64,000 nucleotides of DNA from Amoebophrya sp. A120 (Eukaryota; Protista; Dinoflagellata), in the NCBI GenBank assembly GCA_905178155.1, contig CAJINV010000012.1, positions 429,271-493,270 of the forward strand, given 5' to 3'. Below, piece after piece: positions 31,401 through 56,500 of this stretch. Numbering within the stretch: position 1 is the stretch's first letter; each line of letters starts with the position of its first letter. The position numbers and the translations under genes are program-made. A model generated the notes under the pieces. That model was not told the DNA's origin. It saw only the letters and a program-made list of their open reading frames with translations, and did no database searches.

Positions 31401-34400
31401 CGGACACGAAGACGAGTTGTTCCGGTTTATTCTCTGCGCTGAAGCCGCTGCCGAACCCGAATCACGTGCAGGAGCAAGAACTTTTTCTGCAGAGGACTTC
31501 TGTGCTGGAGTCGAGGGAACGTCCGAGCTATTGGTGGTAGTATTGCTCGAAGAGGACGAAGCTGCACCAATTTTGCTTATTTCTTCATCAGGATACAGGT
31601 GTAGGTCTGCAACTGCGTCAGGATCTCCACGCACTTCTCCCGTCGGGACTGTGTAGTAGTTCTGTTTACTATCTCCATCGCGACCACTGCTTCCCTCGTT
31701 CTTCTCCTTGTTCCCAACCAGCTTCTCAGCAGTAGTTTCATTCCCATTCTTCAATACTTCCCCTTCTCGTTCCCCTTCCGGCACTACAATATTTAACCGT
31801 ATCAACACGTCTCCCTCCCAATTCGCCGACTTTTTCACGTCAAACCGGTTGTCTCTGGACAAAACAAACACCAGGTACCGGAGAGCCAGGTCGTGGACGG
31901 ATTGCCGGTGCTCGGACTCCTCGATAAAATGCATGATTTTCGCACTGAACGTCTGTAAAACCTTCGAAGTGGAGTAGTAATCCTGCTGGTTTTTGTAGTT
32001 TGTCCCGCGAACTACAAATGAAGACGACCCCGGTGCGGGAAGCAGCTGCATCTCTTCATTCTGCTTTGCCGACTCTTATCACCAGAAAAAGTGTTCACGT
32101 TTATGGTTTTCACAGATTGCAGCAATGCATCACAAATTTAGCCTAGTGTGCATGCTATGCATCACAAATTTGGGCACGCTTTGTGATGCATTGCCGCATC
32201 ACAGATAGTTCCGTAAACGTCAACACTTTTTCCTGTGATAACTCTCCGATCGCATCGATTAACCCCGGAATCCGGCCGTAGTGATACCGCGGGTTTTTGT
32301 TGCTGAACCGGAGCTTTTTATCTACTTTGGAAGCGGAAGTAGAAGCAGTGTCATTCTGGTTTTTATTTTCCTCGACAGTTTTGTTGATTTTCGCCATTAA
32401 ATAATCGTAGCAGACTTCCGCGATCGGATCCGCGCGGTTCGCCTTGCTGTGTATCAAAGTGAAAAAAGCCCCCGCCCCATATCAAAACGATGCATGCAGT
32501 AGAGGACTGCAGGCCCATACTATGCCAATGCAATGTAGAGAGGTTGCGGCCTAGACACTTAGCATGGGGAACGCCTACGCCGTAGGACCAACAGCATTGC
32601 AAACCGCCTGAATGATGGGGCGGAGCCCATGCCGTTGCTTTCAGACTTGGTTTGTGGTCACAAATCAGCATCACAAATTTTCTGAGACGCTCCTTTCCGA
32701 TATCGGGAGGGGGGATTTTTCCTTCCGATACTTTGATCATGGTCTCCAAGCAGCAGACCGGACTTCATCAGAACTTGCTGGTGAACGAGCTCCGCGTGTT
32801 GATACTATCAAGTGCAAAAGTGTCTGGATCTGGAAGAGTGCATGTTTGTCATGCTTGTCTGGCACTCTTGGAAATTCCCTACTACCGCTCGGGGGAGCTG
32901 GAACTTTCGCGAGACCAAACGAAATGGCAAGCGAGGTCCGCGCGCCCCCCCCTGGAGGTGAGATACGAGGGTGGCCCTGTGTTGTGATCTGCAATCTGCA
33001 TTAGACCACACAGGAAATGAGGAAGTTGGAGAAGGATCAAAAAAATGATCTGGAGCGACACTATGGAACGCTCCAACAACCTCAGCCAACCACTGCCCTC
33101 GCATTCACAAGAGACCTGCCGAAACAGACTCAACTCCGGGTAGCCTTCCCGAAGCCGACCTCTAAGTTCGGCCTGGTCAGCAACGAGGCAATGTCCTCAG
33201 GGGCCGTTAGGAACCTCCCGAAACAATCGTCAACGAGCTTCAGCGCCAGGAAGCCGCTGACGAAAGAAACGCACAGACTGTTCCCAGTGGCAAGAACAGA
33301 AAGGCAGGGACATAGGTGAACCGACAGTGACACCAACTCGACCAAGGTAACCCAGAGTTCCGGACCCGGGGAAAACTGGGGACCACGCAGCAGAAGCGCA
33401 GCACAAAGACGCCTGAAGTGTTCCCAACCGCCAGTCAAGCAGCAGCCAAAAGTCAACGGAGGCAGCAGCAGAAGCCACTCAGGTACTCCACCGAAGACAA
33501 GAGGAGCCGCAAGACCCAGAGCAAGCTCCGACGGCCACAACAGACGCTTCTACTTTCGCAACGCCACTGGGGACGAAGACAGAGGGCAAGGCAAGAGCCT
33601 CGCGCAACGGGAATTTCCCACCAAGCCATGTCAACGACCTCACATGAGAAGGCGCACCAGAACGGCCACGAGAGGGGTAGACATAGGACATCCAGCATCC
33701 AGACACGTCGCCAACACCGAAGGCGGTGAGCAACGCCCATCATCTCGCTTGCGGGATCCGTCGCCACGCGTTCATGTTGGTCGGCACTGGCTTCCACTCG
33801 TATCTCGTCCTCGTGGGGAACCCAGACATGGCTACTACCTCGAACGAGGGAGCTGGAAATGCCGCGCGCGCTCGCATACGCATCTGGGGCGGGGAACTCA
33901 AGATACGTCCAGCAGCCCGCCGACTCCACTACCGTAAGCCATTTAGGAGTACCCGCGCCGCCTCGCGAAGCTCCTATGGTCCCGCCCTGGCCTGCGTTGC
34001 TGGGCCAGTCCTGTGCGCAAATGCCCAGAATCCAAACACGCTCTATCAGGGGTGCCGCTAGAGTCACAGCAGGGACGTTACGCGCACAGACTATCAGGTC
34101 TGCCCTGGATTCTGGGGGTGGGAGAGATGTGGTGACAGCGCAGGCGAGTCTTGGTCGAGCGACAACATCATCTTCCAGGGTCCACAGGAAGAGCGGGCAC
34201 CTGTGATTCAATTGAGGCAACGGCGGGGACGGACATGTTCCGCCCCCGTGCACACAACAACAGAGTAGCAGACCGGCCAAATGATTGAAAGAGAGAAGGA
34301 GACACAACGAAGCTACATCACATGCAAGGACTTAACGGGAGGATGAAACCAAAAAGCACATCAATAAAAATAGCTCTATACTACTTTGCTCCCCCCAGAA

Positions 34401-36441
34401 GATCGCCATCACATGGCCGCGGCTCCAGCGCACGCTCGCGTCCCGTGATGCGCCACCCGGCATCTGCTGATGCGCGGACCCTGCGCGGAAGATGTCTTCC
34501 CGAAAGCGTCCGACTCCACCCACGCTGGGGATTGTGCGGGGCCGCGTGTGGTGACCAGCCTTCTCATCGAAGACAGTGACGAAGCGCCCTTTTCCGCTCG
34601 TGTTGTGCTTTATACCGAGGTCCATGCTAATATGCTTGTCATGGCGCCTGCCCAATCCACCGGCAGTCATTGTCGGCGTGGCGGTCCTTTACCGTGCTTC
34701 TGGGCGTGGGCAAGACGGTAAGTCGATGGCTGTCGTCGGAGGAGAGGCCATGTACGTTTTCAGTGTGCGCACGGACGCTCGGGGCGCCGATGCTCTAGCT
34801 AGTACTACTGTAAAGGGGCACAGAGGACCCGCCACGTACGGGCGTTTATCTACTTTCCTTTCGAAACTCCACTGCAGGGAGTCGGGGGAGGTACCGACGT
34901 GGCGTCAGTGGTAGTAAAACAATTTAGGAGATGAGCAACAGAATGGTCCTACTCTACGGCATAGCTCCCCCTGTTCTACATTGATGGATCTCAGGCAACA
35001 AGACAAAGTCTTGAGCCAAAATGGCTACGGCATGACTCTTGAATCTGTCATGCAGGTTACCCAAGCGCTGAGCTTTTTTGTCATGCAGAAACGCAGTTTG
35101 TCATGCAGAATAGGCAACACCTAGAAGCTCAGAAACTTGTCATGCTGGGCCAGCACTTGTGGCCTCATCATGATGCGCCACCCAGCATCACAAGTTTCCA
35201 GACCCAGACATTTTTGCATTTGATAGATACACTCCTCTCACCAAAGAGCTCGGACAAGCCCCCGTGGCGCCAGAAATATTTTTAACATGATGTTGGTCAA
35301 CTTCTACACCAGTGCCACTGCACTCACCCTTCGCCAACTTGCGGTAGAAGTCCCTTTGTGCCTTGCTGTAATCATCCTCGGGAAACTCGCCTTTCGCGAG
35401 GTTGCGGTAAAAGTCTTTGTCCTGCGCTGCTTTCAATTGCTCGTTTGTTGTTATTTTTCCAGGAAGCTGCAAAGGCAAACCCAAACCCACCCCGCCGAGC
35501 AAGGCGGCTTGCGCCGCGAAGTGGCCGCTACCGCCGGGGGCCGTGGCCAGCATCTGCTGTGCAGCAGCTAGGTAGCTGTAGTAGGCGGAAGCGGCTGGCG
35601 CCGCTCCAAGCTGCCCGAGATGCTGGTGGTGCAACTGCAGCAAGGGATCTTGAGGGAAAAGCAAGGGGTTGATATTGTGCAACGGCGGAAACGCGCCGGC
35701 GCTAAGCGGAAGAACACCCGGAGGACCACCGGGAGTCTGCTGGATCGCAGGTGTAGCAGTGGTTGTGGTACTTTTTGCCGCAGAAGACGCACCAGCTCCT
35801 GGGGTCGTCGATGTACTAGTAGCCTGTTGCTTGATCCCAGCCAGCGAAGAACCGCTTGGAGAAGTCGTGCTGGAAGGCGTCTTCAACACTGCATCAGCCG
35901 CAGAGGCAGTGGGCGACGGCTGTGCACAAGAACCACGACCTCCCTGAGGTAGAGGTTTATCCCCATGATGACTGCTCTTTCGCAGGCTATCCGGCGAGGG
36001 AGAGCTCGGGGAAAAGCCGGCGACTGTAGAGCTGTTGTCGTCCTCTTCGGTAGGACTACTCAGCAACTCGTGCAGCAGCTGCTCGCGTCTGGTTGTGGTT
36101 CTTGTAGTTCCCGCAGAAGTTGGATTTGTCGTGTTGGAAGCAATCGCATGGCTGCTCAGGTCAAACTTTTTGGAATTTGACAGGTGCGAGGCGTTGTTGT
36201 AGTTTTGGTCCGAGTTGCTCTGACAATTCCAACCTCTACTTTTCTTGTACTCCCAATCCTGCTGGTGTTTGTACTCCCAATCTGGCTTGAAATTCTGCAG
36301 ATACCGGTTTTTCTTCGGGCCGGTTTTGGAAGACCAAGAGCCTTTATTTGCGGAGTAGCGGCTGCCGTATTTGCTATATCGTTCTTCGCGGCCCGTGCCT
36401 GACGTCTCCGAAGTACTAGAGGTCGGGTACGAGTGCTTCAT
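28495..36441 (-). CDS. Large orphan protein (1332 aa, 8 exons) with low-complexity N-terminus and a family-3 module
   Basis: Seven introners each removed with one DR give a continuous 3999-nt frame: GVY|QHAE, HDQ|SKANRADP, IGE|SAKQ, ELMK|LKKQW, LNA|TLLHDVLPACRRL, SLQL|EKL, QRG|HQEF. Confidence 0.85.
28634..28939. mobile_element. Introner, family D
   Basis: TATTGCAATGAAAAATGCCCCCACCCCC...GGGGGTGGGGGCACTTTTCACTGTAATA; exact DR GCCCC. Confidence 0.9.
29018..29253. mobile_element. Introner, family E
   Basis: TATGGGACTCTCAAACGTTA...TAACATTTGAGAACGCCATA; exact DR CAACT. Confidence 0.9.
29462..29742. mobile_element. Introner, family C
   Basis: TATCAAATGCAAACGTGTCAGGGTCTGGA...CCCAGACATATTCGCAATCCATA; exact DR TCGCG. 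Confidence 0.9.
29788..30014. mobile_element. Introner, family H
   Basis: TIR of about 33 bp, TAT(C/G)CAAGAAAAAA.CTGT.T.AGTGTAA.TCT; exact DR CTTCA. Confidence 0.9.
32077..32240. mobile_element. Introner, family G
   Basis: 30-bp TIR TATCAC..GAAAAAGTGTT.ACGTTTA.GG; exact DR ACTCT. Confidence 0.9.
32452..32730. mobile_element. Introner, family D
   Basis: TATCAAAGTGAAAAAAGCCCCCGCCCCATATC...GATATCGGGAGGGGGGATTTTTCCTTCCGATA; DR CTGTG/CTTTG. Confidence 0.85.
32871..35031 (-). mobile_element. Retroposed copy of a spliced-leader-bearing RNA
   Basis: The 5' boundary is exactly the dinoflagellate SL; imperfect target duplication GGCA(TGA)CTCTTG on both sides; no introners inside and no recognisable ORF. 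Confidence 0.75.
35010..35031 (-). other. Dinoflagellate spliced leader (DinoSL) sequence, perfect 22-mer
   Basis: The minus strand reads GCCGTAGCCATTTTGGCTCAAG, which is DCCGTAGCCATTTTGGCTCAAG. It is followed by AC rather than the GT of an SL RNA gene. Confidence 0.95.
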
Positions 36442-37528: not shown

Positions 37529-39504
37529 TCACGCTCCCACCGCCGGGGGTCGTTTTTTCCCGAACAAGATCGCCACAACGGTCGTCAACACCAAGCCCAA
37601 CATCGAAGTCCCGATCACACTCCAACTGGTCACGCACGCGATGTAGACCGTCCAGAACAGCAATGGCGCGGTTTTGAACGCGGTGGTTTTACTGGCCATC
37701 ATCATCCCCCAGGACAGCCACGCCGCGGACATGGTGTTTGCCATCGTTTCCACTAAAAACGCCTGCCGGAACCCGAACTTCTCCGCCACCCGGGACACCA
37801 AAATGGACGTCGGGAACCCCAACGCGATGGCGCCGGCCAGCCAGAGTTTCAGCGGTTGGTCAATGTTATGCAATGCAAAAGTATCGTACTAGTATAAATT
37901 GCATTACAAATTCCCCCAGCATTACAAATTGAATTTGTAATGGTGATTTACTTTGACAAGTGGATTTGTAATGCATAAATGCAATTACTACGAGTACGAT
38001 ACTTTTGCACAGGATAAATGGGCAGGTACATGGACTTCAGCAGCACCGCACCGAGTTATGACAGTGCACAACTTCCCACCCCCCTCATTTGTCATGCAAA
38101 ATGCGAAATCCAGGCTGTGCCTCTTGGGAGTGTTTGCATGACAAACTCCGGAAGCCCAAACAGTACTGCGCTCCTGTGCAAGTTTGTCATGCAAAACTGC
38201 CACTCTTGCTGACGCTTGGATTGCCGTTCGTGCTATAAAAATAAGGAGGAGGGGAAGTTGTGCACTATCATATGAGTAAAATATCCACCGCGCCCATGCC
38301 TTTCAGAATGCCCGTCACGAGCCAGCGCTGGTGATCCGGGGGGTCGTCAGAGGAAAAGGCGTCGTCGTCATCATTTTTGGAATGTAGTTATGCATCGCAA
38401 AGTGAGTATCGTACTTAGTATCTCTATTTGTATTGACAAATAATATTCCAAGAGGGAAAGATAAAACTTGTCATGCTGGGGCAGGTAAAAAAGCGGATCT
38501 GTCATGCGGCCAAGCTGGCAACTAGTACGAAAATACCACTTTTGCATTTGATAATAGTGGGTGGTTGTGCGATGCCCCGCCGGTGGCGCCGTCTTCTCTG
38601 TAGTTGTCGCTAGCGCTGTTTTATCAAATGTAAAAATGTCTGGGTCTGGAAGAATGCAAGTTTGTCATGCTTTTCTGGCATGAGTCTTAAATCTGTCATG
38701 CACATTACCAAAGAGCCCCACTTTTCTGTCATGCAGAAACGTAGTTTGTCACGCAGAATAGGCAACACCTAGAAGCTCAGAAACTTGTCATGCTGAGCCG
38801 GCAATTGTGGCCTCCTCATGATATGCCACACAGCATCACAAGTTTCCAGACCCAGACATTTTTACATTTGATATGTTTCGCCCGCTCATGCCGCAGGCAC
38901 TGTTGATCATATTTCCACTATGAACTGCAAAAGTATCGTATTCGTATAAATGCATCACAAATCTCCTCAGCATGAGAAATAAAATTTGTCATGCGGATTT
39001 GCCTTAAGACAAAGATTTGTAATGCAAGACTTGCATTTGTACGAATACGATACTTTTGCACAGCATATCCACGTTTCTTTAGCATTTTGTTCCCGGGGAG
39101 AAAGCACAGGAAGTACTGCGCTGTGGAAAGCATCTTCTCGTCGTCGGGACTGGTGTTACTAGCATGACCCCCATGCTGATCCTTGCCGTTGTGCTTCTGG
39201 AGAATACTCGTATTATCGTCCCCCAATAACGGGCCGATGACCGGCAACGTCGCTAAGTCCACCCCGCTGCGGTTTAAGATCAGTGTGTATGCACTGCAGA
39301 AGTATCGTACTAGTAGTAATTGCAATACAAATTCGCTCAGCATTACAAACGGAGTTTGTCATGCTGATTTGCCTTGGGAAGGAGATTTGTAATGCATGAC
39401 TGCGATTACTACAAGTACGATACTTTTGCACAGGATAGTGTGCCCGCACCGGCGATGAAGATCGGTTTCACGGCGTGGAGAGCGGAAACTTCGAGCATCA
39501 CCAT
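37529..39504 (-). CDS. Multi-pass membrane protein (287 aa, 7 exons, about 4 C-terminal TM helices)
   Basis: Six introners removed give an 864-nt frame: MVMLEVSAL...GAGT|LILN...KKRG|NMIN...GRN|SASD...HPL|HSK...DILL|GAVLLKSMYLPI|DQPLKLWLAG... Confidence 0.9.
37867..38016. mobile_element. Introner, family A
   Basis: TATGCAATGCAAAAGTATCGTACT...AGTACGATACTTTTGCACAGGATA; DR AATGT/AATGG. Confidence 0.9.
38057..38272. mobile_element. Introner, family B
   Basis: TATGACAGTGCACAACTTCCC...GGGAAGTTGTGCACTATCATA; DR CGAGT/TGAGT. Confidence 0.9.
38389..38553. mobile_element. Introner, family A-like
   Basis: TATGCATCGCAAAAGTG...CACTTTTGCATTTGATA; DR GTAGT/ATAGT. Confidence 0.85.
38622..38873. mobile_element. 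Introner, family C (young)
   Basis: Perfect 30-bp TIR TATCAAATGTAAAAATGTCTGGGTCTGGAA; exact DR TGTTT. Confidence 0.95.
38919..39067. mobile_element. Introner, family A
   Basis: TATGAACTGCAAAAGTATCGTATTCGTA...TACGAATACGATACTTTTGCACAGCATA; exact DR TCCAC. Confidence 0.95.
39288..39437. mobile_element. Introner, family A
   Basis: Family-A TIRs; exact DR GTGTG. Confidence 0.9.
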
Positions 39505-53561: not shown

Positions 53562-56500
53562 TCAGTCCGTCTCGTCAACATCATCTCCATCCAAATCCGC
53601 CAGAAGCTGCGCGAATCGCTGCGCCTTTTCCATGTCCTGCTCGACAAAAGCGTCCGCAATCTTGATTTTGTACTTCTTCCGCTGCTTGCTTTTCCAATCC
53701 GAAAGTTGTATTGGTTCCGAAGAAGTACTAGCGCTCGGCCGTGCTACTTCTGGTTGTTGTAGTTGTTTCTGTTCAGGCAGAAGATTTTCTCCTTCGTGGT
53801 TGCAGTAGTTCTGATGGCTCATCCCATTGTAGCGGTAGCTCTGCAAATCTTGTTCATCCTCTTTCGGCGAATAATGATTTTTGCCGAACGCTAAGGTTTT
53901 ATTCGCTGTTCCAGATGCAGGAGCAGTGTTTTTGTTCCTTGAATCGCTTCTCAAAGCCGCAGTCGTGTCTTTTGTTGTTCTTGACGGCGCCCGCGGCGCC
54001 CATGTTGTGCTAGAAGGCGCCATCTGGAGGTTCCCGCGGCCACTGTCACACCAGCTGGTGTCTCCAGAGGAAAAAAACCAGCTCTGTGTTGGACCTGGTG
54101 TTGTGTAGTAGCGGTGGTCAGCAGTAGTTGTAGCTGCAGCTTCCGGCGCTCCTGCTGTGCGTGCTGTAGCTGTGCCTGCTGCGCTTCTCCATGATGTTGC
54201 ACCACAGTAGGAACTGTCAGAGGACTCGTCTCCTTGACACGGCTGCTGCACGACCCCCACCTCCTCCTGCCCCAGCGCTTCACCAAGCAGCTGTTGCAGT
54301 TCCAAGCTAGCCGCCCACTGCTCCGCGGAACCCGTAGCAGCCCACTGCTCGTCCAAGTGGAGTTCGTGGAGGAGCGTCGTCTGGATCTTTGCGACACTAC
54401 ACTGCGACTGACTAGCAACATCAGCTGAAAAACTTAAACTAAAACTGCTATCGCAATTATGCAGTGCTCTTGCGGTGGGGAGAAGGCGCAGAAAGTTTTC
54501 GTGCACTGCGGTACTCGTTGCCGCATCGTAGTATCCGTGTTTTTTCAACCACTTGCTCGCTTCGCGCCGAAGGCTGTTCGCGATAAACCAGGTGTCCCAC
54601 TGGTAAGCGTTTGCTTCGGGCCGTCGCTCCAGGCCGTCGTGTGTCAAATTCCAAGCTTGCACTTTGTTTACTAGAATTTCCTTCGCCGCAATGCTGTAGA
54701 AGTTCGAGGCTGGGCCCATCAAGTCCAGTGTCATCAGGATCATTTTCAGCTTCCAGTCAGGAACCTCGTTGATTTGCTTTCTGAGTTGCAGGGCTTGCAA
54801 AAACGTAGAGTCAATGTCGTTCACGTTCTTCGGCACTGCTGTTGCAGATATTGTACTAGCTGATGGTGTTGCAGATGTATTTGCTGATGTGGTGCTGCTC
54901 ATGTTGCTCCATGGGTGGTCACACGGGGAGCCATAATGTTGATCACCAACAACATAATTTCCCTGCGATGAAGATGGTGCAACGTCCGCCGCCAGTGCTG
55001 CGGAAAGCAGCTGCTCCAGTTCCAGACTCGAAGCCCACTGCTCAGCTGCGTTTTCCTCTTGGAGCTGCGTCCGCTGCTGTGTTGAGTTGTTGTTCCAGCT
55101 CGATTTTTCCGCCTGGTTGTTGTGCCGACCAGTAGTAAAGCTAGTACTTGAAGATGAATCGAGTCTTCGCGCAGCGGGTAGAAGATGGAGAAATTCCGCG
55201 TGTGCCGCACCTCCGTTCGACGCCGGATCAACTCCGTGTGGTATGAATTGCAAAATATCGTCCTCGTAGTATTGCAATACAAATTCGCTCAGCATGATGA
55301 GAACTTAAATTTGACATGCTGATTTATCTTGAAGAAGGTATTTGTCTTGCATGATTGCGATTACTACCGGTGCGAAGACGTTTTTGCACAGGATATGTGT
55401 TTTCATCCACTTATTCGCCTCCAGCCGGTACCGCCCGGGGACGTACCAGGCGTCTATCCTCTGCAAAAGTATCGTACTCGTAGTAATCGCAAACATGCAT
55501 TACAAATCGTGCTCTTAAGGTAAATCCGCATTACAAATTTTATTTCTCATACTGAGAAAATTTGTAACGCATGACGTCGCCTCGGTAGTGTCTTGGCCTC
55601 GGTACGCCACTACAAGTTGGCGCACCGAGGCTAGAAGAAGTTTCTTCAGGGCGCACATACGAAATGGCGCACCGAGGCCAAAAATGCAAGTTTTTCGGAA
55701 TTGCCGCCTCGGTGCACCGAGGCTGACGGCCTCGGTGCGCCAACTTGTAGTCACGAACGAAGCAGCAGACGGGCGGAACACAGGGGGGGGTGGGGGGGCC
55801 CGTCGGCTACGTCGCGAGACCACGCGCGCGTGCCTTGTTGGCGGGTAGAAAAACAAAGCCCGGACCTTGGCCCGCGTTCGAGGGCAAAGTAAAAAACGCA
55901 GCAGGCGAAGGCGCCCGCGTCACCAGGGACAGGCGTGCGAAACTAGTCTGGGGCCACCGACTTGCGCGGCGCGTCGCGCAAGCATGCGATGGGCAAAGGC
56001 GCGCGCGGGCGTACATCATGCGGGCGCGAGGAATGACAGAAGCAAGTACACAGCGAAGGCGCATAATGTTTCAAAGGCGGGCGCTTCCCAGCGAAGTTTT
56101 TGCGCGCCGCCTCGGTGCGCCAAAATGTATTGTGAAGGCGCGCCGCTACCATACGAATTTTGTAGGTGGGAAAAAAGACATACTTTGGCGGGCTCGGTGC
56201 TGCCATACGTTACAAACCGCACCGGGCTCGGTGCTGCTTTTTGGCGGGTTTTCTCGATGCAAAAAGCGCGAAAATTGTAACGCCCCACATACGATTTGGC
56301 ATACCGAGTCGTATGTGCGTACCTAGGCCACGTCATGCATTTATACGAGTACGATACTTTTGCAGTTCATAGCGTCCCACTGGTAACCGTTTCCGCTCTA
56401 CCGTGAGGAAAAATCTCCCCTCCCCATATCGAAAAGGAAATTTGTTATGCTGATTCGTGATCAAAAATCAGCTTTGTCTTGCGCACAAGGCAAACGGCAC

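Follow-up and report, generated by a model that had tools for sequence, protein, structure and literature searches.

The window analysed here, 64,000 nt of DNA from Amoebophrya sp. A120, raises the question of how a segment of 2,167 nt that begins with a dinoflagellate spliced leader (DinoSL) came to lie inside an introner, and of whether it is a single stray copy of a transcript or one member of a mobile family. The features of the locus on which the following analysis is based are:

32801 to 35225, minus strand: host intron, consisting of the introner and the insert, 2,425 nt; in X4 record 9, an RNA-type contig, 32800 and 35226 are direct neighbours
32806 to 32864, minus strand: arm of the host family-C introner on the 3' side, with its TIR (32806-32835), as aligned to an intact copy
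35032 to 35225, minus strand: arm of the host family-C introner on the 5' side, with its TIR (35196-35225), as aligned to an intact copy
32848 to 32864, minus strand: right-hand portion of the palindromic target split by the insert, TGC-N7-GCATGAC; the left-hand portion, GTCA, is at 35033-35036
32865 to 35031, minus strand: the insert (element A), a copy of an apparent SL-headed, non-coding retroposon, 2,167 nt in length; its initial 1-3 nt could equally belong to the target duplication
35010 to 35031, minus strand: DNA-encoded DinoSL at the 5' end of element A, followed by AC; single match, 0 expected
34592 to 35031, minus strand: 5' module, i.e. the SL and about 270-440 nt, with 81-88% identity to L013, L018 and L019 and to at least 10 further sites
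32950 to 33355, minus strand: module common to a further repeat family (L017, L020), about 75% identity, at least 12 copies
32865 to 32897, minus strand: 3' tail of about 30-33 nt without poly(A), in which a C-run precedes CCCGAG..GGGAAT and ..CAAGAG forms the end
32861 to 32864, minus strand: 3'-side copy of the target-site duplication, TGCC, which is present only once at this place in the intact introner
35029 to 35032, minus strand: 5'-side copy of the target-site duplication, overlapping SL bases 1-3

The insert splits a family-C introner, the two arms of which show 88% and 89% identity to the intact copy at 38622-38873. As proposed in a preliminary description of this DNA, the 30-nt TIRs of the host (32806-32835 and 35196-35225) and its GATAC direct repeats (32801-32805 and 35226-35230) are intact. 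The same description suggested that splicing of the 2,425-nt intron be checked, and its exact removal is seen in an RNA-type contig, from the coordinates of which the host exon junction is taken; the introner still splices after nearly ten-fold growth, from 258 to 2,425 nt. The intron boundary is ambiguous over 5 nt in the GATAC repeat, with no position giving GT..AG, the ends being GT..TA or TA..AG depending on where the boundary is placed. With a 30-nt TIR, a 5-nt direct repeat, exact removal and non-canonical ends, the host element is an introner of the type described for Amoebophrya (Farhat et al. 2021, PMC7789003), whereas the insert itself is not an introner. Because its target lies inside an introner, and introners are spliced via their terminal repeats, the insert is lost in its entirety from the host mRNA together with the intron.

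An assembly artefact was considered, given that repeats collapse in short-read contigs and that no X1 contig bridges the junctions; however, the RNA contig skips exactly the 2,425 nt that were assembled, and the same structure is present on five other contigs. A segment belonging to an SL RNA gene array was rejected, the SL of the insert being followed by AC, with a single SL in the window, only one SL+GT in the entire genome (on contig C11) and no Rfam match. An origin of the insert as an artefact or as part of such an array is thus scarcely credible.

With respect to the boundaries, contigs of empty introners place the left edge of element A at 32864/32865, TGACT directly following 32864 in contigs of other introner copies. 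The insert consequently occupies 32865-35031, and the start at 32871 that had been assigned to it is incorrect. Nor do GGCACTCTTG (32861-32870) and GGCATGACTCTTG (35029-35041), which had been taken for an imperfect target duplication, represent one, because the CTCTTG at 32865-32870 is the 3' end of element A itself (CAAGAG), which is kept in sister copies with different flanks and is absent from the intact introner. The true duplication is of 4 nt: GGCA, which reads TGCC in the direction of the element, at 32861-32864 and again at 35029-35032. The window contains one DinoSL, a perfect match of 21/22 nt on the minus strand (35031-35010), and, as had been observed from the letters, it is followed by AC and not GT. 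The match to the 'perfect 22-nt' SL of the preliminary description therefore stands, but not the assignment of all its bases to the leader, since three of the four duplication bases coincide with the first bases of the SL, such that nucleotides 1-3 are shared between SL and duplication.

The early view that the insert has neither poly(A) nor a recognisable protein is borne out by reading of its 3' end, which has no A-run and terminates in ..CAAGAG, and by Pfam searches of eight ORFs on both strands, which gave no domain above the cut-off; element A has no conserved ORF, and no RT or EN ORF of its own. The recommended scan of its ends for ribozymes, carried out as an Rfam search, came to nothing: no family matched at E <= 1 over 32500-35400, which implies that the insert region contains no ribozyme. 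Folding of the last 146 nt of element A was not better than that of shuffled sequences (z = -1.1). No element A transcript was seen in the RNA-type X4 contigs, which have zero depth on the insert. Depth in the DNA run is mostly 3-12x that of the unique flanks, and the sequences that share the 5' module are other SL-headed families.

A BLASTN-type search of the genome (115.5 Mb) with the insert, as had been recommended, returned multiple SL-headed copies with target duplications, together with 5' truncations, and no SL-less copy. The SL-headed copies number six and are 80-99.5% alike. Element A has four near-full-length sisters, on other contigs, which are 94.6-99.5% identical to it, the nearest being at 99.5%. 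SL heads are present in L002, L003, L004 and L006, with the junction SL|ACTTTG identical in the first three; L006 is a diverged subfamily, the SL start of which is on a different leader, and the fourth near-full-length sister, L005, has kept a partial SL. The 5'-truncated copies begin at element positions 1311, 1348 and 1606, always at the host junction, and have intact 3' ends. The window copy has a single SL and L018 has two complete ones, whilst in L015 an SL precedes an SL relict that is cut at its internal AG, a tandem arrangement implying that a DNA copy was transcribed, trans-spliced again and retroposed again. Judged from these relationships, the SL-headed and truncated copies form a retroposon family that is non-coding, small and of recent activity. 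Of the two options in the preliminary description, i.e. a trans-spliced non-coding RNA or a non-autonomous retroelement, the multiple SL-headed copies, the truncations and the 99.5% sister favour the latter.

The SL at the 5' end and the lack of an intron inside the insert could also be explained by the chance landing here of a single processed retrocopy, made from some ordinary transcript of the cell, and SL-tagged retrocopies are common in dinoflagellates (PMC5585692, PMC12014239). Such an event does not explain at least 19 insertions with a common tail at one target, for which no parent locus, coding capacity or poly(A) is apparent (no SL-less parent locus is present among the genome matches to element A), and it is exceedingly improbable; a single processed pseudogene was rejected because the copies of tail and target contradict it.

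Genome-wide there are 19 occurrences of the 3' tail motif, compared with 0 in the reversed control, and all 19 adjoin the TGC of a target that matches TGC-N7-GCATGAC perfectly (14/19) or with one mismatch (5/19), the 3' junction being exact to the nucleotide in each of them. The complete palindrome, GTCATGC-N7-GCATGAC, has 5,064 occurrences in the genome (about 0.1% of the genome) versus 1 in the control. About 15 of the 19 copies are closely followed by an introner TIR, invariably on one and the same side. The target duplications are 3-15 nt long (3-4, 7-8 or 12-15), each matching the sequence of its own locus, and those of all loci start at the same nucleotide, the GTCA^TGC nick; the duplication is of 13 nt in about half of the copies, and at four 5' junctions there is filler or re-copied target. 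In metagenomes, all 34 matches to the tail motif are chance matches in bacterial-looking contexts, 0 of them with the target. The insert thus did not land here by chance; the family has a defined 3' tail and is specific for one palindromic site in introners. The site specificity of insertion had been missed in the preliminary description.

That many introners carry the insert at an equivalent position might suggest spread at the DNA level, by composite introner transposition or by gene conversion between introners. However, the inserts are 94.6-99.5% identical, compared with 79-88% for their flanks over at most about 180 nt, and other flanks are unalignable or come from other introner families; the far greater divergence of the flanks indicates that the insertions are independent. 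The duplications, in addition, are locus-specific and of differing length, and the 5' truncations start at the host junction. Spread by DNA copying is accordingly very unlikely, and the composite-introner form of DNA transposition and gene conversion were rejected because of the diverged flanks and the locus-specific duplications.

It is also conceivable that an unrelated, dimeric nuclease, perhaps the enzyme that acts on the internal octamers of introners, cuts the palindrome and that cDNAs made elsewhere are ligated into the breaks, with no dedicated RT/EN targeting the site. The target is a symmetric palindrome, symmetric nicks in which would give the 13-nt duplication of around half the copies, and the filler and re-copied target at the four 5' junctions look like repair. 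Plain capture, however, would be expected to take any cDNA in either orientation, whereas the RNAs represented at the site are exclusively tail-bearing, in constant orientation and with a 3' junction that is exact in 19/19 cases, so we regard break capture as quite unlikely.

The copies, tail, target, duplications and diverged flanks together point to site-specific target-primed reverse transcription (TPRT) of a trans-spliced RNA. Element A is very probably a non-autonomous, non-coding retroposon, with insertion of its trans-spliced RNA by tail-primed TPRT at the introner palindrome. The proposal, made from the sequence of this one locus, of a recent full-length retroposition of a trans-spliced RNA or non-autonomous element, tolerated through splicing of the introner, is therefore supported. 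We infer an RNA intermediate that is capped by SL trans-splicing and carries the specific tail of about 30 nt in place of poly(A). An RT/endonuclease supplied in trans would nick the bottom strand at GTCA^TGC; cDNA synthesis would be primed on the tail, the RNA being copied up to the SL or with an early stop, and a top-strand cut at a distance of 3-15 nt downstream, in many cases at the symmetric position GCA^TGAC, would generate the duplication. Transcription probably occurs by read-through in the host gene, in the sense orientation, with the AG of the relict SL serving as acceptor; the sense orientation of the elements relative to host genes is assessed from flanking ORFs only.

Template jumps of the RT would account for the filler that re-copies the target and for chimeras of A with a second module, X (L059, L062, L066 and L070, with a diverged form in L071). 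The upstream module of each chimera extends to the C-run immediately preceding the tail, which is common to the A and X modules, and the start of the downstream module is variable. Chimeras of U6, Alu or mRNA with L1 are template-switch products of L1-mediated retroposition. They likewise have a constant upstream 3' end, a variable 5' truncation downstream and a single duplication, but the modules of the element A chimeras are A and X RNAs ending at the C-run before a common tail, rather than snRNA or poly(A) RNA.

Comparison with other systems is informative. Tx1L in Tx1D of Xenopus is a site-specific LINE inside a DNA transposon, an arrangement termed 'composite transposable elements'. As with element A, a retroelement occupies a single defined sequence of a DNA element with TIRs, in one orientation; in contrast to the autonomous Tx1L, which has APE and RT, element A encodes nothing, carries an SL and has a spliced intron as its host. 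Element A resembles site-specific LINEs in that 19/19 copies lie at ^TGC-N7-GCATGAC in one orientation, but has no RT and endonuclease coding; it shares with TPRT retroposons the variable duplications, the 5' truncations with intact 3' ends and the lack of an RT/EN ORF. CRE, SLACS and NeSL target SL RNA genes. The comparison with them in the preliminary description is only a loose one, holding for the likeness to SL-linked retroelements but not for the target, since element A carries the SL and targets introners. The site-specific non-LTR elements R2, NeSL, CRE and SLACS and their non-autonomous SIDE derivatives (for R2: PMC3636483, PMC5035012) are, like element A, sequence-specific and do not need poly(A). 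A precise first nick, a variable second one and an RT that jumps from template to template end to end are likewise features of these elements and of the mechanism proposed for the element A family.

The DinoSL-tagged retrocopies (Slamovits & Keeling 2008; PMC5585692; PMC6050394; PMC12014239) likewise have a DNA-encoded 5' SL, not followed by GT (SL|AC in element A), and are intron-less; tandem SL relicts reflecting repeated rounds of transcription, trans-splicing and retroposition are present in them as in the element A relatives L015 and L018. Element A is not a gene copy: no intron-containing parent is seen among its genome matches, it has no poly(A) remnant, and its family differs from these retrocopies in being multi-copy and non-coding, with its own tail, no poly(A), a target, duplications and truncations. 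The mechanism of retroposition in dinoflagellates has been stated to be unknown, with the proposal that retrotransposons 'may' mediate it (PMC12014239). The element A family provides a clean set of recent integrations, with SL heads, truncations, duplications from one nick, template jumps, a tail and a target, and such readable hallmarks mean that the enzyme and its recognition rules can be searched for directly. The family also documents the complete canonical 21-22-nt DinoSL in the genome, only 13 nt of which had been seen on transcripts in this genome (PMC7789003). Amoebophrya introners are, moreover, a safe haven for another mobile element, and their conserved pair of internal octamers would be a site that is cut by some nuclease.

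A more specific, though unlikely, reading is that the insertions are footprints of a dimeric nuclease that recognises the internal octamers common to all introner families of Amoebophrya and makes symmetric GCA^TGAC nicks 13 nt apart. If so, either the same RT/EN machinery would also mobilise introners, for which no transposase was found in A120 (PMC7789003), or the retroposons would use the introner enzyme; SL trans-splicing would then be the general means by which retroelements without promoters make their 5' ends in this genome. In five other cases an SL is situated 2-9 kb upstream of an RT domain, compared with 0.23 expected by chance, which lends support to these ideas. As for the RT/endonuclease of the preferred TPRT model, no RT-encoding element with the element A tail or target and no RLE partner was found, the 12 RVT_1 loci that were examined being without the tail, the X module, the target or an SL. 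Possible drivers in the genome comprise an APE-type LINE and RVT_1 hits numbering over 100. The sole lead is an X-like 3' module located 1.9 kb downstream of an RVT_1 hit at C1:8.59 Mb, and further candidate RVT_1 loci are at C5:5.70 Mb, C6:2.85 Mb, C21:0.64 Mb, C1:4.72 Mb and C2:0.54 Mb.

The insert that splits the family-C introner, a mobile intron with terminal inverted repeats (TIRs) and a short direct repeat (here GATAC), is headed by a spliced leader (SL). The perfect 21-nt core of the dinoflagellate SL (DinoSL) has a single match in the window, at 35030-35010 on the minus strand, with 0 expected by chance; the preceding G at 35031 completes the 22-nt DinoSL and AC follows, versus GT in the SL RNA gene, as the preliminary description stated. 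The flanking introner arms (left, 32796-32870; right, 35032-35245) are 88% and 89% identical, respectively, to an uninterrupted copy at 38622-38873, where they join at a single position, and the 30-nt host TIRs (32806-32835 and 35196-35225) and the GATAC repeats are intact, which bears out the claim that an introner with preserved termini had been split. The absence of poly(A) and of a recognizable protein also held, with no A-run at the insert's end and no Pfam domain in any of its ORFs on either strand. A scan for ribozymes and RNA families against Rfam gave no match at E <= 1, and no second match to the insert was found elsewhere within the window.

The borders of the insert differ from those first described. 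The uninterrupted introner reads ..GACTCATGCCAGAAAAGCATGAC.. at the junction, and the split host, on the element strand, reads ..GAGTCAT, then GCCGTAGCC ... TTTCCAAGAG, then TGCCAGACAAGCATGAC.., a comparison that assigns CAAGAG to the insert; CAAGAG also terminates sister copies having different flanks, and in contigs of other introners TGACT stands directly after 32864. The left edge is at 32865, not 32871, and the target duplication is TGCC, three of whose four bases coincide with SL bases 1-3. The imperfect 10/13-nt duplication proposed earlier arose because the element end, CAAGAG, by chance resembles the host sequence CAAGAGTCA. The features are:

32865-35031, minus strand: SL-headed insert, 2,167 nt (element A)
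35031-35010, minus strand: complete 22-nt DinoSL
32447-32730: neighbouring 284-nt intron of the same host gene

A search of the genome (115.5 Mb, 401 contigs, the largest 16.50 Mb) recovered multiple SL-headed copies with target duplications, as well as 5'-truncated ones; no parent locus of element A was found in it.

Copies of element A, with identity to the window copy
L002/L074, C1:13.56 Mb: 99.5%, near full-length
L003, C24: 97.4%, near full-length
L004, C1:12.46 Mb: 95.1%, near full-length
L005, C1:6.00 Mb: 97.2%, partial SL, element positions 24-158 deleted internally
L006, C1:6.08 Mb: 80-94%, diverged SL-headed subfamily with another leader after the SL
L008, L007, L011: copies starting at element positions 1311, 1348 and 1606

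At L002, L003 and L004 unrelated flank gives way directly to CCGTAGCCATTTTGGCTCAAG followed by ACTTTG, and L005 starts at its partial SL. The depth of the DNA-type run X1, ~145-530 on the insert (one bin ~48) versus 45 on unique flanks, agrees with several genome copies. The longest ATG-initiated ORF on the sense strand of element A is 113 aa, and no ORF is conserved between copies. The inserts of the five near-full-length copies are 94.6-99.5% identical over 2 kb, whereas their flanks either reach 79-88% identity over ~180 nt or less, or are unalignable. Spread of the insert within a transposing composite introner, or by gene conversion between introners, is therefore excluded by the divergence of the flanks together with the locus-specific duplications.

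All copies share a tail of ~30 nt, comprising a C-run, CCCGAG, a variable but related 14-nt stretch that ends in GGGRRT, and ~10 nt that end in AAGAG, AAGG or AAAG; the genome contains this motif 19 times, a reversed control 0 times. Directly 3' of the tail lies TGC-N7-GCATGAC in 19/19 copies (14 perfect, five with one mismatch), and at readable 5' junctions the flank ends in (G)TCA, followed by a duplication opening with the same TGC. The complete palindrome, GTCATGC-N7-GCATGAC, is present 5,064 times in the genome versus once in the control, and its half-site octamer GCATGACA 50 times in the window versus 2.5 expected, a 20-fold enrichment. About 15 of the 19 insertions are at the palindrome copy closest to one TIR, which is always downstream of the element. 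A nested insert at 55573-56334 has borders at the same octamer half-sites (..CGCATGAC before GTCGCC.., and ..CCAC before GTCATGC..).

Target duplications by length
3-4 nt: window copy, L008, L011, L059, L064
7-8 nt: L004, L071
4-7 nt (ambiguous): L066
12-15 nt: L002, L003, L005, L006, L007, L062, L073

At each locus both duplication copies agree with the sequence of the locus itself. If the two strands were nicked symmetrically at GCA^TGAC, a duplication of 13 nt would result, in keeping with the largest class. Filler of 4-25 nt is present at the 5' junction in L002, L003, L006 and L071, in the first three of which it partly re-copies the target.

These results support and extend the proposed retroposition, and the finding is real. 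In the best-supported mechanism, an enzyme supplied in trans reverse-transcribes a trans-spliced, tail-bearing RNA by site-specific target priming. The data show the family with its tail and target, the independence of the insertions, the chimeras and the removal of the enlarged intron; from these we infer the RNA intermediate, the order of the nicks, the enzyme and the source of transcription. Transcription could plausibly come from read-through of the host gene, and the trans-splice acceptor would be the AG ending the relict SL, or an internal AG as in L015. At the latter locus an SL that lacks its 5' end precedes an SL relict cut at its internal AG, an arrangement that Slamovits and Keeling reportedly regard as the signature of transcription, renewed trans-splicing and renewed retroposition of a DNA copy; judged by that signature, L015 would be a DNA copy that was transcribed, again trans-spliced and again retroposed.

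In 9/19 copies the tail follows a second non-coding module, X, rather than A; the repeated part of X is 676 nt (L074:5468-6143). The same tail variants are found on both modules, from which it follows that A and X exchange tails. In L059, L062, L066, L070 and L071, X has variable truncation points (1253-1795) and a short piece of A lies upstream, ending at 2135-2140, i.e. in the C-run just 5' of the tail; in the diverged L071 similarity stops at 2116. L059 is composed of A(..2139), X(1801-1853), X(1496-1853) and the tail, and L002 of SL-A(2-2139), 1,177 nt of single-copy sequence, X and the tail, all within one 12-nt duplication. A constant upstream 3' end, a variable downstream start and a single duplication form the pattern that template jumping by a reverse transcriptase would leave. 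L1 chimeric retrocopies and R2 end-to-end jumps have the same pattern. The 1,177-nt segment between A and X (L074:4291-5467; C1:13566290-13567466) has no second copy in the genome and may have been captured from another RNA. Element A itself is a mosaic: its SL and the next 270-440 nt are 81-88% identical to other SL-headed families, and positions 1677-2082 are ~75% identical to another repeat family. The latter repeat, at L017:109-1902 and at least 11 more places, extends into a 513-aa low-complexity ORF with the same start ATG as a 98-aa ORF at window 33104-32808.

The host gene tolerates the insertion at the level of splicing. An RNA-type contig of run X4 (record 9, 3,699 nt) joins 32800 to 35226, skipping 2,425 nt, with a boundary ambiguous by 5 nt owing to the GATAC repeat, and also lacks the neighbouring 284-nt intron; the predicted splicing of a 2425-nt intron is thus confirmed as exact removal, which still occurs with the intron enlarged nearly ten-fold (258 to 2,425 nt). 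No boundary placement is GT..AG, only GT..TA or TA..AG, which places the intron among the non-canonical introner introns described by Farhat et al. (PMC7789003). Element A is in the sense orientation relative to the host gene, and flanking ORFs, with ~10 sense versus 1-2 antisense sister copies, weakly suggest the same for most of these. No transcript of element A was seen, X4 depth on the insert being 0. Two RNA-seq runs from 2026 that bear the same species label (X14, X15) gave no read on 3.5 kb including expressed exons, and may represent another strain or contain little parasite RNA.

Among known systems, the family comes closest to DinoSL retrocopies, to site-specific non-LTR elements (Tx1L in Tx1D; R2/NeSL/CRE) and the non-autonomous derivatives of these, and to template-switch chimeras. 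What is new is the combination: a non-coding mosaic body carries an SL at its head and a specific tail lacking poly(A), and has as its target a palindrome within spliced introners.

The reverse transcriptase domain RVT_1 has more than 100 matches in the genome, among them an APE + RT LINE (L022). Among 12 such loci examined, 0/12 carry the tail, module X or the target, and no partner for element A was found. By coordinates alone, an RVT_1 match at C1:8.59 Mb has an X-like 3' module 1.9 kb downstream (estimated chance probability ~0.02), and of the 51 perfect SLs five are located 2-9.4 kb upstream of RVT_1 matches on the same strand, versus ~0.23 expected. The coordinates of these five, which precede matches with long open frames, suggest that RT-encoding elements may be SL-headed too:

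C1:4723978
C2:546545
C5:5697871
C6:2848237
C21:643684

Only one of the 51 perfect 21-nt DinoSL copies genome-wide is followed by GT (C11:2800775-2800797, minus strand), and is presumably the single SL RNA gene reported for the published genome (PMC7789003); the remaining 50 are DNA-encoded relicts. Another family of SL-headed retrocopies, 1.27 kb long, is represented by L018:1-3263 (C14:386441-389703) and L019:1-3263 (C2:8654772-8658034); the two copies share 99.5% identity from the SL through a short A-rich end (..AAATGAAAA) and are inserted at a site other than the introner target. L018 carries two complete tandem SLs, and 81% identity to element A extends over its first ~270 nt beyond the SL.
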